A stretch of DNA of 64,000 nt. Source: Blastocladiella emersonii ATCC 22665. Lineage: Eukaryota > Fungi > Blastocladiomycota. Under the pieces are notes generated by a model. It ran no database searches. It was not told the origin of the DNA and worked only from the letters and a program-made list of their open reading frames with translations. Shown one piece after another: positions 5,049 to 49,502 of the stretch (positions are counted from its first letter, which is position 1; every line of letters begins with the position of its first letter). Position numbers and translations under genes: made by a program. The stretch is from the NCBI GenBank assembly GCA_025594325.1, contig JANHCV010000010.1, positions 62,001 through 126,000 on the forward strand, in the 5' to 3' direction.

Positions 5049-5537
5049 GGTCGGTCGGTTGGTCGGTCAGTTGGTCGGTGGCGCTGACGGACGCTCGCGA
5101 CGGTACGGGGATGCAAGGGGTATCCGGGAGCAGCAATTCTAAGGGGCGGCCGGAAACCGTGCAGCGCGATGCAATCGAAGCAAGTTGAGGTTCTCGAGAG
5201 AGGAGAACGAGAGGAGGAGAGTTGACGGTGTCGGCAGGGCCGGGGCAGGGGCAGTCAGCGGTCGGCGGTCGCCTCAGCCACTGGGTCGGCGCCGCACACC
5301 GCTGCAGTCCGTCTCCTCTCCCACTGCCCGTCTCACAGGTTCGCAAGTTCCCACGCTCCCACGGTGGCCACGACCACCGTTGCGCTCATGTCGAGGGTGA
5401 TGGTGATGGGATCATGATCGTCAGGCCCGGGCGGCATCGAGAAGGTTCGAAACGCAAAACGCGCGGCAGCGTTAGAGTCTATTTTGAGAAGGTGCGTGCT
5501 ATTTTGAGAAGGAGCGTGTCGAGGTGCGCGGACGCAC

Positions 5538-6047
5538 TCACGGCGGCCCAGTCGGCGATGGCGAAGGTGATGGAGGCCGCGGGGGCTCCCAGGCGTGGAG
5601 GACGCTCTCAGTCTCGACCGAGATGGCAATGGTGAGGAGCGACTCGGGCGGCGTAGGTGGTGGCGGGCAGTCGTCGCCTGTAGCGGCAGTGGGGAAGCAG
5701 ATAGCCGAGGGCGTAGTGGGAGCGGGCGTGTAGTGCGGGAGGAACTCGCCGCCGCGGTCGTCGGGATCGTCCTCGTAGCGGCGGCGCGATTCCGACCTGG
5801 ACGGCCCCACGTCGTGCAGAGCGCTCTCCCCGCGCGCTGCGTCCGCGTTGGTCGCCGCAACCGACCTGCGCAACAGACGCAGCGAGCACGAACACACGAT
5901 CGCGAGGATGAGGGCGAGCAGCAGGCAGCCCACGACGAACCAGGTGTAGGTGGCGTCGTCGGAGCCGAGGTGCGGCATGGCCATGGCCATGTTCATGTGT
6001 TGCGCTGTTGGTGATGGTAGCAGTCGTGGTGGGTCGTTTGTGTACAT
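5538..6047 (-). CDS. Small single-pass membrane protein with Pro-rich cytoplasmic tail (LPxY motif); start codon uncertain
   Basis: TM WFVVGCLLLALILAIVCSCSL followed by RLLRR; tail contains EFLPHYTP and PPPPTPP. Confidence 0.5.
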   Translation of the reverse strand: MYTNDPPRLLPSPTAQHMNMAMAMPHLGSDDATYTWFVVGCLLLALILAIVCSCSLRLLRRSVAATNADAARGESALHDVGPSRSESRRRYEDDPDDRGGEFLPHYTPAPTTPSAICFPTAATGDDCPPPPTPPESLLTIAISVETESVLHAWEPPRPPSPSPSPTGPP

Positions 6048-6121
6048 TGCTTCATCCGCGCTTCATCCGCGCCGAGCCGAGGGAGAAGAGGAAGCGTCCA
6101 CGACACTCGTGGGCCCAGGGT

Positions 6122-7174
6122 TACCGTCACGCACACACGACATGCTCACATCCGCGTCTGTACCCGCGTCGCTCACCATGCTGCTAGCGCGCCTACTTCG
6201 TGGATCAGGGCATCGTGCCCGACTGCCCGCCCGCGCTCCTCGAGCTCATCGCCCGCTAGGCGGACCTGCGCCGGTTCGCGCGCGCCTACAACTCGCAGCT
6301 CGCCATGGCCGCCGTGCTCACGCAGCCGGGCGCCCGCACCAACCCGCACGGCGTCCACAACTCGCGCCTCAGCTTCTCAATGCTGCGCGGCGCAACGTGG
6401 TACGTCGCTCTCCGACCTCGCCTTCTTCAAGAGCGCGCTGCCGCCGCTGAGCTCGCCGCCATAGCTGCTGCCGCCGGTGGCCCTGATGCTACTTAATTGT
6501 CGTCTGCCGCCGCGGGCGATGGCGCGGACGCCGCGCAGGGCGAGAGCTTCCTCGCCAACGGACTCGAGTCGCGCCGCGAAATCGCGGACGTGGCGCGCAG
6601 CGCCGGCACCGGTCTGCCGTCGTACTACTTCCACGACTCGAACGCGCTCACGGAGAACCACATCTTCGGTAACTGCACGGTGCGCCTGGTCAAGGCACTC
6701 GGCGACATCCTCCAGGAGTCGAACCCGCTGGTCCGCGGCTACGTCAAGATCCGCGACATCATCAAGGACACGCGATCCGCGGTCGAGACGCCCATCGTGC
6801 GCATCAACACGTCGCGCTCGGGTCCGATCCTCAACTCGGCCGCCCTCCTCGTGCCGTTTGCCCGCGCCAAGCAGAACCACCTGCCCTACGTGTTCGCGCT
6901 CAAGCTCGACGCTGGCCACCACAACGGCCGCTTTTACGACAAGCGCATGAACGTCCTGTCAGCCGAGTACGAGCCGCTCGCGTTCCCGCTGCTGTTCCCG
7001 TTCGGGCAGCCCGGCTGGTCGCCCGAGCTCAAGAAAAGTACGCCATCTCCCTCGCCCGCCGCATCACGGAGCGCTGTGCAGGCCGCCGCCACTGCCTCCG
7101 CGGCCGCCGCCACGTCCGTCGCCTCAACGCGTCCTCGCCGCGGCCGTTGTCGCGACGTTCCCCTTCCCTTATAG
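6122..7174 (+). mobile_element. Degenerate, 3'-truncated Helitron RepHel N-terminal fragment
   Basis: One frame reads PCC*RAYF..PPALLELIAR*ADLRRFARAYNSQLAMA...LRGATWY and later EYEPLAFPLLFPFGQPGW. These match Helitron motifs CCxxG..PP..L....F...IRxYNxxFAF and YDPLxYPLLFPxGExGW. In-frame stops at 6185, 6257 and 6494; no Rep catalytic or helicase motifs follow. Confidence 0.75.
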
Positions 7175-7997
7175 TGGCTGCCCCGAAGCCAGCGCACCTC
7201 GCGGCTGCAACGACCGTTGTGATCTCCCGTATGGCATCGGCGGCCTCGCCGCGGGCGACGTCTAATCAACGTCCGCATCCAGCCTTCCCTGTGCTTCTCG
7301 ATACCCACTTTACTGCTTTCTGCGACTCCCAAGTCTCGACCATTCTCTCATAGCGCACTCCGCGTGATACGTTGCTACTCTATGTCCACTATCAGCTTTC
7401 CCGCGTGTCTCGCACTCACGCGTTCAGCCACTCACATGACCGCGACTCCTGTGACACCCTGCACTTCCGTGGCCCCATCCAGCCTTCCCTCGTGTCCCGT
7501 TGCTATGGGATGCGATCCACAGGTCTCGAGGACCCTCGCGACGCCCAATCTCCCTTACAGCAAACTCCTGTCGGGGGCGTCGCGCGAAAAAAACTTGTCA
7601 CACATGGAGACCGTGACACCCAAAGTACGCGTTGTCGATGCCCGAGGTCGGAGGGAGGTGGTGGAGAGGGCGGAGAGAGGGTGCCGTAAAGGCAGCGCGG
7701 GCGCGAGGGTGACGTGAGAGTCGGGTTGGGTGGGTGGGGAGAGCCGAGGGGGCGACGGGTGCAAGCAGGCGACGGGCGCGAGCGTGCGGGGGTGGGTGGG
7801 AGGCGGGCAGGGTAGACCGAGGGCGCGAATGCGTGTCGATCTGTTGCGAAGACTCCGCTCGAGCAGAACCGGGGGCGGGGGCGCGGCTGGTACTTATAGT
7901 CCCGGCGGGGAGGGCGGCGGCGCCAGCGGTCAGGCCAGCGGTGAGCGGCGAGGAAGCCGACCGACTTCGCCCACACCCGTCGACTTCCTTTGACTTT

Positions 7998-42499: not shown

Positions 42500-43158
42500 G
42501 GCGGTAGCGGTGGCGGTGGCGGCGGCGGCGATGCGGGTAGTGGCGGTCGCGGTCGCGATGGATCAGAGACAGCGAGCGCGCGTCGATGGTGGCGGCGACC
42601 GATGGGCGCGAGACACAGAGGAGGGAAGCAGCGCTTGTCTCAGCCGAGCCCGGGGTGGCTCAGACACGAAGTGGGAGCCAGACGAGCAGGCGCGGCGATT
42701 GAGTTTGCCGATGGCGATGGACCCGCGCGGAGAGGGCGGCGGCGGCGTCGGTTCGGTTCCGGCGACGTCGGTGGCGGCACAGCGCGTGCCGGCGAGCACG
42801 GGTTGCGCGCTCCGGATGGGAGGACGGGGAGGGAAGGTGGGGAGCACGAGGGATCGACCGAGGCCCTCGCGCGGCGAGCTGGGTGTGGGGCGTCGATGTC
42901 GCGGCGGCGGCGTGCAAAGTGGGCCGGTGCAGGCGCGGCCGGCAGTAGCGAATACGTTGCAAGGAGTCGGGTGTGGGTGCGTAGCGGGGCATGGCCGCCG
43001 CGGTCGAGCTGGCCGGCGATGGAGGGTGCGGTGGCGGAGGGCCGGCTGCCGGCTGCGTCCCACGCCGGCGCCGTGGCCGCGGAAGCGCCGCAGCCCGCGG
43101 CCGTTTCGCTTCCATCGGTCGGCCGCGTCGCTCCGCTGCACCACTGGACCCGCCGACC

Positions 43159-44268
43159 ATGGAGCGATATTACCACCCGGTGCAGCCGCCCGACCCGCCA
43201 GCCGCGAACGGGGGTCCGCCGGCCGCCGTGGTGACCGCGCCGGCGCCAGGCGTCGCCGAGGACGCCTTTGCCGCGGACCTCGTGGCCGCCGAGCTCGACT
43301 GGACCGACTTTGTGACGCACCCGGCCGCGCCCAAGCTCGTCCATCGCGTGCGCCGCCATGATCCCGTGTCGGCCCCGCGTCAGTCCAAGGCATCGTCGTC
43401 GGCCTCGTCGCGCCGCGCGGGAACCCAGCGGAGCCATCGCTCGGCCCCGCCATCGTCTGCCGCGGCTGGCACGTCGAGTGCGTCGCGGCGGACCCACGCT
43501 GGCGTCGGTGATGTCGATGCGCTCGCCACCTCGCTCGCGTCCGCCCGCCTCGACGCTGCTGCTGTCGGACAGGCCGACGCCATCGACCCGGCCCTCGACA
43601 TGACCTCGCCCTCCTTTGATCCCGCGCGCGCCCTGGCCACGCCGACCGCGTCGCTCCCGCCCGACTTCTTCCCTGTCCGCAAGTTCCCGCTGTTCGACAA
43701 CCTCGCCCAGTTCACGAGCCTCGTGTGGAACCCTTCCTCCTCCTCTTCCCCTTCAACCGCACCCCCGCCTACGCCGGCCGCGGGCCCGTCGTCATACAGC
43801 ATGGACCTCGCCTGGCTCGCCGCCTCGGCCGCGTCCGCCGACTCGCCGACCGCCGCCGTGCGCGCGTGGCACGTGTGGCTGCGGCACGCGCACCGCGTGC
43901 ACGTCGGCTGGCACACGGACCGCCTGCGCCGGATCACGGCGCGCGCCGAGGCCGCGGCGGCCGACCGCGACACGGCGGCGCGCGAGGCACGGAAGGTCGC
44001 GGTCCTCAAGGCGCGCGAGGCGGCGCTCGCGCTCGGCCGCGCCGTCGAGTACTGGGACTGGGCCGGCCGCGAGTTCCCCGACTGGGCTGCCGCGCAGCCC
44101 AACAACCCGGCGCAGATCGCGGCGCACGCCGAGACGCTCGACGCGTGGACGGCCGAGGCCGCGGCGGCGGCCGCGGCGGCGGCCACCGCGTCGGCGCAGA
44201 AGAAGGCGGCCGTCGCGATTCCCTGGTCTCGCCGCGCGCGCGTGTCGCGGACTGGCGTAAAGTCGTAG
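43159..44268 (+). CDS. Protein carrying an LSM11-like N-terminal motif
   Basis: Codon-biased ORF. LDMTSPSFDPARAL..P..LPP...P...PLFDNLAQFTSL resembles the LSM11 N-terminus as recalled ([40 protein letters not shown]). No clear Sm2 motif. Confidence 0.6.
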   Translation: MERYYHPVQPPDPPAANGGPPAAVVTAPAPGVAEDAFAADLVAAELDWTDFVTHPAAPKLVHRVRRHDPVSAPRQSKASSSASSRRAGTQRSHRSAPPSSAAAGTSSASRRTHAGVGDVDALATSLASARLDAAAVGQADAIDPALDMTSPSFDPARALATPTASLPPDFFPVRKFPLFDNLAQFTSLVWNPSSSSSPSTAPPPTPAAGPSSYSMDLAWLAASAASADSPTAAVRAWHVWLRHAHRVHVGWHTDRLRRITARAEAAAADRDTAAREARKVAVLKAREAALALGRAVEYWDWAGREFPDWAAAQPNNPAQIAAHAETLDAWTAEAAAAAAAAATASAQKKAAVAIPWSRRARVSRTGVKS

Positions 44269-44373: not shown

Positions 44374-46318
44374 TCAGTCCCACAACTTGATGGTCCCGTC
44401 CCACGAGCACGTCAGCACCTTGCTCGTCTCGTGCGGGTGCCACACGCAGCTCATGACCACCTTGTCGTGCGCCTTGAACTTCCTACAGAGCAGCGAGCGG
44501 GCACACGGTGAGCGATCATCACGGCACGCAGAGTCAGAGCGTGAGACAACGTACTTGACCAGCTTGCTCGTCTTGAAATCCCAAAAGTTCATGCTGCCCG
44601 TCGAGTCGCCGCTCATCAGGTACTGGCCGTCGGCCGAGAACCCGACCTGGCACGCGTACCCGGCCACGAGGTGCCCGCGGAACACCTTCTTGCGGTTGAG
44701 CCGGAACTTGTCCGTGGCCGCGTACAGGTACACCTGGTTGTCGAGCGACTGGCACGCGAGCCACTTCTCTACGGGTGCGACGAGGAGGTCAGTGACTTCA
44801 CGCACACTCGCAGCGAGACCAAAACGAACGTACTGTTGGGCGACAGCGTGACGGCGGGCATGCTGTGCATGTCGGGCTCGGCGACGTACTTGATGACGAC
44901 GGGCACGTCAAACTCCCACGCGCGCAGCGACTTGTCGTCGGAAGTGGTGACGAAGCGGCGGTTGTGGTCGACAAAGGTGATGGTGTTGACGGGGCCGAGG
45001 TGCTGGTCGTACTCCTGGATGACCTCGCCCGAGCGCGCGTCGTACTGGACCACCTTCTTGTCCTGCTGGCCGGCGAGGAAGATGTGCTGCTTCTCCGGGT
45101 GGAACTGCACGCACAGCGGGACCTTGCCCGTGGTGAAGGTCGAGATGCACTTGCCCGTCTCCGTGTCCCACAGCTTGCAGAACTTGTCGAACGACGCCGA
45201 CAGGAACTGGCGGCCGTCGTTGTTGAAGGTCACGTCGCGCACCGCCTTGTTGTGGCCGAGGAAGGTGCGCAGCACGCGGCGGTCGTTGTACACGTCCCAC
45301 AGCTTGACCTTGCCGTCCATGCTCGCCGACAGCACCAGGTGGCCCGTGCCCGGCAGCAGCCGGATCGCGTTGACCCCCGCCGTGTGCCCGCGGTACGTGT
45401 GGATGCACCGCTTGGGCAGGAACGCCGTGGGCGGGTCGCGGTTCGGCGACAGGTCGACGCCGTCCACCGTCGGTGGGTGCATGTACGTGCGGCCCTGGTA
45501 GTCGGTCTCGGTGCCCGGCTTGCCGTGGAAGATGGACCGCTCCGCGCCGGGCGTGATGAGCCGCGACTTGGGGTTGGCCGACGGCACCAGCGCCGTCGCA
45601 GAGTCGTCAACGGTCCAGTCGCCCGCCACGGCCGAAGGATCGTCCTCGTCGTCGCCGCCGTACCGCATCGCGGCCTCGACGTCGAGCTCCTCGTCCTCCC
45701 CCTCGGCCCCGTCGCCGCGCGGTCGCAGCGTCATGTCGTCGTCGTCCACGAACCCGGCCCACGGGCCCTGGTACGCGTCGTCGCCCTCGACGGCCGCGAC
45801 GTTGCCCGCGGCCTTGCGCTTGCGCTTCACGGTGCGCCGTGTCGCGGCATCCTCGTCGTCGTCGATGAAGTGCAGCCCGCTCGCCGTCGCCTTGCCCGCA
45901 TTCGCCTTCCCGCGCACGGCCGCGTTGTTGAACCGGCGCAGCTGCGTGTTGAAGTCGGTGGCGCCGATGGCGAACAGCTCGGCGTTCCCAATGCGGCCGT
46001 TCTGCACGTCAATCGACTCGGCGAGCGGGTTCGCAGGCCCGACGACGGGCAGCGCGAGCGCATCGTACGGCACGTTGTGCGTGATCTCGCGCGACGTCTG
46101 GTCCTGCAGGTTGTACAGCGCTACAGAGGACTGGGAGTGGATGTGGGTGAGCTCAAGGGATCGCCGAAGCCGGGCGGGGGTGAGCGCGAGACGGAACTCA
46201 CCTCGATGCCGACGTCGGGCGCGGACGAGACGGCGGCGAGCTTGATCTTCTTGTTGCTGGGAGTCTCGACGTCCGAGCCCTCCGAGTCAGATGCATAGTG
46301 CGCGAGAAGCGACGACAT
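44374..46318 (-). CDS. CDC40: Pre-mRNA splicing factor CDC40/PRP17 (WD40)
   Basis: LPKRCIHTYRGH, SASMDGKVKLWDVY, YDQHLGPVN, EPDMHSMPAV, KWLACQSLDNQ, FRGHLVAGYAC, CSWDGTIKLWD*; three introns (first acceptor ambiguous). Confidence 0.95.
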
Positions 46319-47927: not shown

Positions 47928-49502
47928 ATAATTGCCTAGAAACCTTGTATACAATAGTTTTAATCTCAGCCGTTTGGGAGCGAGTTGAACAAGTGACAGA
48001 ACAAGTGAGAGCGCGAGGCGCGTCGCAACAGGTCACTTGATCCCACGCCACTCGAAAATGCAATGCTCACTCCACACGCCGCGAAATAAAGGTTGCTCAA
48101 GGCCGCCTTCGCCATGTCCCCAACCCCCATCGTGCCAGAACTGCTATCCGAGACATACACGCCGACGCCCCGTGCGTCCCCGACTTTCACGCTCCGCCTC
48201 CTCGCGGGTCGCGAGCGCGCTGGTCGATCCATGCTCGGGGGAAAGTCCTCGGACCCTACCACTCTTTGGCAAGCTGTGCGCGTCGTGTGCGTCAAGTTCG
48301 ACCTTCCCTGTACCTCGGTACCTCCCGCCGTCCTCTGCCCGCCACGGGCCCGCTGTGTACTCTGGCCTCGCGCAACCGCTCCGCCGTGTCCTGCCCCGTT
48401 CCACACCAGCCCTCGCTCTCCGAAGATACGAGGCGAGCGAGGGTGGCGCGGGCGCAGGCGCGGCGGTGTCGGCGGCGCTTGGTCGGGCAGCGGTGTGCGC
48501 TCGCGCTTCTCCCGTGGAGGCTGTCGAGGGTCGCGTGCGGGGGAGCGGAGTCGTTCCAGTCGTCATCTCGCTTCTCAGTCACAGGTATGCAGTTGCCCGC
48601 CGTGCGCGATCCTTGCGGTCGCGGGCGGCGGGTTCCACGACGAGGCTCACTCGGCACGCATGGGGTCCCCCTCCTTCCACACACTTGCTACTCTTATGTG
48701 TCCGAGCGCGGCTGACGATGATGCTTAAAGGAATTTCTTCACCTGAAAGAAAATGAAGATCAAAATATTGAGCTTTTTAACCCTGAGTTCGTCGCGCAAA
48801 ACACTTCCTGGCGCTCGCCCGCCATATGTTGCTACTTTTATGACGAGGACCGGGTGCCTCGCCCCTTAAGCAGTTGATCTACGGGTTGATGGTCGAGCGT
48901 TTCCGCGCTGCAAACTGCATCGTTCGAGACGTTGGGTCGACGAGCCTGACCAAGTTGACGTCACCGTGCGCGCCGTTGGCGAAACGCTTGGCTGGATGAT
49001 CTGGCACCGTCGCACAGGAGCCGGTGCTGGACGACGCGTACCCAGCATCAGCGCCAGGATCTGAGCGATGCGCGGCCGCCGGCTAGCACTCGAACAAAGC
49101 AAGTTTGGGCGGGTCGGTGAGGCGCATCATGCGCCTGCCGCAAGTCGCCTTCTGCTGTCCGTGTGTTGCTCCTCACCAGCTCCTTCTCCCATGACCCAAC
49201 GTAACAAATGAAGTTGAAGACTATATGCAACGAGCACACCATGCAACCATGGACTCGCGACGCGGCGAACTGCGATGGCCAACACTGACTGCGGCGCTTT
49301 GAGTTGGTGCGCCGGCCATGAGCATGCGATCTGAACGGCAGGCCCGTCAACCACCAGCAGTCTCCCAAACGATCCTTGATGAGGGGCAGTTGTTGGTTTC
49401 CATCGGGTGGCCTCAGGTTCACAGCCGCTGCGGCACGGGCGAGCATACAGACTTGGCATCGCTTCTTCTCAGCTCTCCCTCCCACTTTGTGAATCGTGAA
49501 CA

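Follow-up and report, generated by a model that had tools for sequence, protein, structure and literature searches.

The locus described here lies in a window of 64,000 nucleotides of the Blastocladiella emersonii genome (GC content of ~70%). At positions 43159 to 44268, the forward strand of this window carries a complete, single-exon coding sequence (CDS) for a protein of 369 amino acids (P0001), which was taken from the list of open reading frames (ORFs) and ends in a TAG stop codon at 44266-44268. The gene model was based on codon-position GC content, conservation, and synteny. Within the ORF, the GC content at third codon positions (GC3) begins at 0.86-0.88 and reaches 0.94-1.00 in the final 500 nt, so that the C-terminal half matches the GC3 of an Hsp70-like neighbour gene (0.94). 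In the in-frame stretch upstream (42991-43158), GC3 is 0.71 and falls below both GC1 and GC2 of that stretch, and a start at position 42991 was discarded for this reason. This pattern indicates that the CDS consists of a single exon, starts at 43159, and is truly coding in that frame throughout its C-terminal half; the gene limits given in an earlier note on this DNA, which had been made from the sequence without database searches, were thereby borne out. A protein identical to P0001, of which 25% of the residues are alanine, is also called on contig JANHCV010000010.1 of the NCBI assembly GCA_025594325.1, which appears under the name B. emersonii in a 2026 preprint (10.64898/2026.07.21.739728). 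Collectively, these data reveal that 43159-44268 is a real, single-exon gene of B. emersonii.

The gene converges with the gene of the splicing factor PRP17/CDC40, which lies on the reverse strand (44374-46073 and beyond) and was identified by a phmmer search of the PDB (human PRP17, E = 7e-109). This neighbour contains at least one intron, and introns were located near 44500-44560 and near 44770-44830. The stop codons of the two convergent genes are separated by ~105 nt in Blastocladiella and by 89 nt in Catenaria, and the same tail-to-tail arrangement was found by tblastn and in gene tables on a metagenome contig, that is, in three lineages in total. Because this arrangement has been kept, we regard the members of the family described below as orthologues in conserved synteny. 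The sole Rfam family in the 64-kb window is the C/D box snoRNA SNORD36 (48713-48791, forward strand), a gathering-level match of 65.4 bits (E = 9e-9); neither a U7 snRNA nor a histone stem-loop was found by Rfam in the window.

Family members and domain anatomy

Relatives of the protein were sought with phmmer at E ≤ 1e-3 among 1.84 billion representative proteins. Four were obtained and nothing else: Catenaria anguillulae ORZ40096.1 (E = 3.5e-24), Allomyces macrogynus KNE68391.1 (E = 1.5e-11), a protein from a JGI metagenome (3300047125, contig Ga0499901_0897; E = 5.6e-7), and Coelomomyces lativittatus KAJ1504809.1 (E = 1.9e-4). All the named relatives belong to the Blastocladiomycota and all are annotated as "hypothetical protein." Word-index protein searches, queried with the motif region, the family alignment, or the entire protein, retrieved no sequences beyond the protein itself and members already known, two metagenome scans with the family alignment yielded pattern matches and no confirmed relatives, and feature searches of the ESM Atlas with the Blastocladiella protein and the Coelomomyces orthologue gave no usable match. 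Within the 1.84 billion representatives, the family was thus found only in Blastocladiomycota, namely in Blastocladiella, Catenaria, Allomyces, and Coelomomyces, and on the one metagenome contig.

The five orthologues were aligned over their full length (A1), over the C-terminal halves (A3), and over one conserved motif alone (A4). In A1, the elements follow each other in the order HPAAPxLVxR motif, bipartite block, variable Ser/Pro linker, helix block, and basic tail, all of which are encoded on the forward strand of the window. The N-terminal motif reads HPAAPKLVHR in Blastocladiella (residues 54-63; 43318-43347) and has no match in Pfam or the PDB. As HPAAPxL(V/T/I)(Y/F/H)R, it precedes the bipartite block in every orthologue (Catenaria, Allomyces, Coelomomyces, and the metagenome, where it lies in an upstream ORF), and it may represent a second docking motif. 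The bipartite block, DPALDMTSPSFDPARALA ... FPVRKFPLFDNLAQFTSLVW (residues 143-190; 43585-43728), follows the consensus LDxTSPxFDPxxALA ... FPLYDNVAQFTxLxW and shows the strongest conservation in the family, low-GC orthologues included; as detailed below, it resembles the LSM11_N family according to PDB profiles and to PF28412.

The Ser/Pro-rich linker (43729-43806) varies in length among the orthologues and is predicted with a pLDDT below 50. It is followed by a conserved, long alpha-helical module (residues 217-305; 43807-44073), which was delineated from AlphaFold2, A1, and a GC3 of 0.94-1.00. The consensus of the helix block in A1 is W..W...VH..WH.(D/E)R.RR ... RE..K...LKAREAAL.L, with the invariant columns W240, R275, K279, L283, R286, E287, L290, and L292. 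Finally, A1 and A3 delimit a basic C-terminal tail, IPWSRRARV (44218-44244), with the Catenaria counterpart LKWSHRKRI; the tail is a possible nuclear localisation signal.

Two of the gene models deserve comment. In the Allomyces model AMAG_13047 (417 amino acids; 5683-7419 of our locus L003, GG745356.1), introns are spliced out and the tail differs from those of the orthologues. The same region holds an uninterrupted ORF of 578 amino acids, which makes the C-terminal part of the model look doubtful. In gene calling, the metagenome orthologue (5280-6597 of our locus L007, on a low-GC, blastoclad-like contig) was split. The protein as called begins inside the LSM11_N motif, although its ORF reaches to 5755, and the HPAAPKL motif sits in an ORF of its own further upstream (5280-5543). 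The two pieces, which imply an intron or a frameshift, were searched and aligned separately and left unjoined.

An LSM11_N-like motif

The earlier note had seen in 43594-43725, which encodes LDMTSPSFDPARAL...LPP...PLFDNLAQFTSL (residues 146-189), a resemblance to the N terminus of LSM11, and PDB profiles as well as PF28412 confirmed that this likeness goes beyond chance. When the single protein was searched against the PDB, the sole match at E ≤ 10 was to residues 22-74 of human LSm11 (E = 0.15). When the five orthologues were combined over their full length into one profile, the four best matches were all to LSm11 (E = 1.3e-4 to 7e-4), with the next match at 0.1. With the motif-only profile A4, residues 32-73 of human LSm11 were matched at E = 1e-5, and the four matches at E ≤ 10 among 177,635 distinct PDB sequences were all LSm11. 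Such a rise of significance with added family information (0.15 to 1.3e-4 to 1e-5) is what homology predicts.

In support of this, the precomputed Pfam assignments list PF28412 (LSM11_N) for four of the five orthologues, the fifth being an N-terminally truncated gene call. Graded by precomputed E bins and not by the curated gathering threshold, the matches are weak in Blastocladiella (E ≤ 1e-3) and Allomyces, faint in Catenaria, and at E ≤ 1e-5 in Coelomomyces. A local Pfam search of the single protein gave no match because PF28412 is absent from the model set used. The N-terminal coiled coil of FLASH binds residues 1-170 of Lsm11 (PMC3884669), and residues 23-130 of Lsm11 bind FLASH in a 2:1 FLASH:Lsm11 complex (PMC5636114); the matched residues 32-73 of human LSm11 fall within both fragments. 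Judged by sequence comparison, the best conserved block of the family is specifically LSM11_N-like.

A long helix instead of an Sm fold

The earlier note had also proposed that the gene retains a decayed Sm fold, on the grounds of a faint likeness of 43840-43935 (encoding DSPTAAV...RVHVGWHTDRLR) to the Sm1 motif of LSM11. This was not borne out. The A3 profile of the C-terminal halves detected neither LSm11 nor any other Sm protein in the PDB at E ≤ 10, no family member was matched by the LSM-type Pfam models at E ≤ 10, and the alignment of the full-length family profile to full-length LSm11 chains stopped short of the Sm domain. AlphaFold2, supplied with the family alignment, predicted helices at residues 217-226 and 230-305 (pLDDT of 86-97) and no strands at all, and the segment likened to Sm1 lies within the long helix. 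Since alanine richness might bias such a prediction, AlphaFold was repeated on the low-GC metagenome orthologue, where it again predicted a helix (residues 87-168; pLDDT of 82-94) and no strands. Foldseek matched the model to no PDB entry at E ≤ 0.001, which is unsurprising for one long helix.

An LSM11 protein should possess Sm1, made of a helix and strands beta1-3, and Sm2, made of strands beta4-5. The former was found neither by Pfam, nor by the PDB profile, nor by AlphaFold, and in place of the latter the C terminus consists of an Ala-rich helix and then the basic tail. The AFDKFWNMAL and Sm2 motifs, which the earlier note had been unable to see, are indeed not visible. Lacking the Sm domain, the protein should not be classified as an ordinary LSM11 orthologue or as a standard subunit of the U7 snRNP.

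Two places in which an Sm domain might have been concealed were considered and ruled out. The other reading frames of the gene read as Arg/Pro-rich junk, and a downstream exon carrying the domain is precluded by the end of the PRP17 gene only ~105 nt away, which leaves no room for it. Weak matches of the protein to NAGLU_N, DUF4698, INTS15, TagF_N, and mL101 were dismissed as far below threshold. Collectively, what follows the motif is a long and conserved helix for which the coding constraint is clear, and this helix of ~80 residues probably forms a coiled coil or a binding rod.

Histone mRNA processing in Blastocladiomycota

The premise of the earlier note that fungi lack the U7/stem-loop pathway is outdated for Blastocladiomycota, in which SLBP and histone 3′ stem-loops are kept according to a preprint of October 2026 (10.64898/2026.10.14.759114). 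The same survey reports histone transcripts with a stem-loop plus a poly(A) end from Allomyces and Catenaria. Among fungi, it detected LSM11 in Rozella allomycis and Nematocida displodere alone and LSM10 in Massospora alone, and it called the U7-associated machinery of fungi "sparse" (10.64898/2026.10.14.759114). For Blastocladiomycota, no U7, LSM10, or LSM11 is reported there and the family described here is unmentioned. Our literature search returned no other paper tying LSM11 to Blastocladiomycota.

Discussion

The gene had been interpreted in the earlier note as a relic or repurposed component of the U7 pathway. The part of this proposal that rests on the LSM11 N-terminal motif stands, given the profile statistics and the occurrence of PF28412 across orthologues, and the part that rests on an Sm fold does not. 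We consider it probable, with room left for other explanations, that the family is a blastoclad-specific, Sm-less descendant of the N-terminal extension of LSM11 and combines a FLASH-docking module with a helix and a basic tail. According to this explanation, a canonical LSM11, such as is reported for Rozella, would have been present in an ancestor, and the motif block would descend from the N-terminal extension of that protein. The motif would still bind the coiled-coil N terminus of a FLASH-like protein, and the two together would offer the CPSF73/CPSF100/symplekin cleavage module the kind of platform that it has in animals. Since an Sm ring has no place for a protein of this kind, U7 snRNA would not serve as its tether; stem-loop-bearing, SLBP-associated histone pre-mRNAs would instead be reached through the long helix or through another partner.

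Two points speak against this explanation. The segment shared with LSM11 amounts to ~45 residues, a length at which convergence or capture of the module by an unrelated gene may account for the resemblance. Moreover, since polyadenylated histone mRNAs with a stem-loop are reported in Allomyces and Catenaria, U7-type cleavage may not occur in these fungi at all. A bolder version, which we think rather unlikely, holds that the protein is a protein-only substitute for the recruitment arm of the U7 snRNP: a FLASH-like coiled coil and the CPSF73 module would dock on the motif, and the helix would tether this assembly to SLBP-bound stem-loops without a guide RNA. If true, such a substitute would account for the presence of stem-loop histone mRNAs in a phylum from which U7, LSM10, and canonical LSM11 have not been found.

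Among the alternatives, we take most seriously an unrelated blastoclad protein which, without descent from LSM11, acquired a FLASH-binding motif by evolution or capture and might serve as a mimic, a competitor, or an alternative adaptor. Only ~45 residues are in common, short docking motifs can converge, and the HPAAPKL motif and the long helix have no detected counterpart in LSm11. However, the motif is bipartite and matches the family consensus at ~19 positions, with their order preserved and their distances similar, whereas typical convergent motifs comprise 3-6 residues; in addition, an ancestral source existed, because Rozella, which stands at the base of the fungi, is reported to have an Sm-bearing LSM11 (10.64898/2026.10.14.759114). 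On balance, we find an independent origin unlikely. More doubtful still is a gene fission that distributed the N-terminal extension and the Sm domain over two genes, so that the long helix would rejoin an Sm-only LSM11 in a U7-like snRNP. A fission would explain why a phylum that has SLBP and histone stem-loops kept the docking motif, and a short Sm-only protein is not easily recognised as LSM11 in a survey. Against it, there is no report of U7 snRNA, LSM10, or LSM11 from Blastocladiomycota (10.64898/2026.10.14.759114), and the window contains no matching element, SNORD36 being all that Rfam gave.

The two remaining alternatives are disfavoured by our tests, and to each we would assign very little weight. 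One is genuine orthology to LSM11: the Sm fold would have diverged past recognition, and the protein would still join a U7-type Sm ring. The LSM11_N motif would fit this view, as would the faint likeness of RVHVGWHT to KVNVHIRT that the earlier note had picked out, and the Sm domains of LSM11 are unusually diverged and contain a long insert. Nevertheless, the C-terminal profile had no match at E ≤ 10, despite the presence of full-length LSm11 and many Sm chains in the PDB, and Pfam gave no LSM match. A continuous helix without strands was predicted in two orthologues (main protein pLDDT of 86-97), the conserved residues fit a helical pattern, and there is no space for another exon. The other, equally doubtful, is a chance resemblance in an alanine/proline-rich orphan of a 70% GC genome. 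The single-sequence E value was merely 0.15, the local Pfam set gave no match, and 25% of the protein is alanine; yet conservation in the family is highest at the motif, low-GC orthologues included, the profile reached E = 1e-5 with LSm11 as the sole match in the PDB, and an independent Pfam model matches four orthologues.

This family bears on how replication-dependent histone mRNA processing evolved outside animals. If the descent from LSM11 is correct, selection has preserved the FLASH-docking module of that protein throughout Blastocladiomycota, and the Sm domain has been lost together with the link to U7 snRNA. What appears new is an Sm-less variant built on a known module, LSM11_N, with a function proposed from sequence relationships. 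The gene is a concrete, clonable candidate with which to ask whether a platform of the FLASH/LSM11 type can work without U7 and what the proposed intermediate state of histone 3′-end formation looks like in molecular terms. Surveys that demand an Sm domain will overlook Sm-less relatives of LSM11_N.

The closest known system is LSM11 itself (human P83369; PDB 6V4X, 9N96, and 8G1U chain D), which has the bipartite N-terminal motif in common with the blastoclad protein: P-x-L-D-x-x-S-x-x-F-D-P-x-x-A-L ... P-x-(F/Y)-(D/N)-N-(V/L)-A-(Q/E)-(F/Y)-x-S. In both proteins, a helical, Arg-rich segment follows the motif, which does not imply that the helices are homologous. In human LSm11, the Arg-rich helix 107-118 contacts CPSF73 (PMC12774660). 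The conserved (D/E)R.RR helical stretch of the blastoclad proteins lies ~60 residues past the motif and is not aligned to LSm11 by the family profile; it recalls the CPSF73-contacting helix, and we mention this only as a lead. Unlike LSM11, the blastoclad protein has no Sm1, Sm2, or beta strands, its motif is located ~140 residues from the N terminus as opposed to ~30 in LSM11, and its HPAAPKL motif and 80-residue helix have no detected counterpart in LSm11.

The LSM11 candidates of Rozella allomycis and Nematocida displodere likewise come from early-diverging holomycotans with parts of the histone stem-loop pathway (10.64898/2026.10.14.759114). They were identified by BLAST and domain criteria, and our comparison with them is by description only; without an Sm domain, the blastoclad family would fail these criteria. 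A further point of comparison is the N-terminal coiled coil of FLASH/CASP8AP2 (dimer of the PDB 5TQY type, PMC5636114), which has no sequence similarity to the blastoclad protein, the FLASH chains in the PDB being unmatched at E ≤ 10. It is likewise a long helix able to dimerise and acts in the same presumed pathway, and FLASH comes into consideration only as a likely partner of the blastoclad protein, not as its relative.
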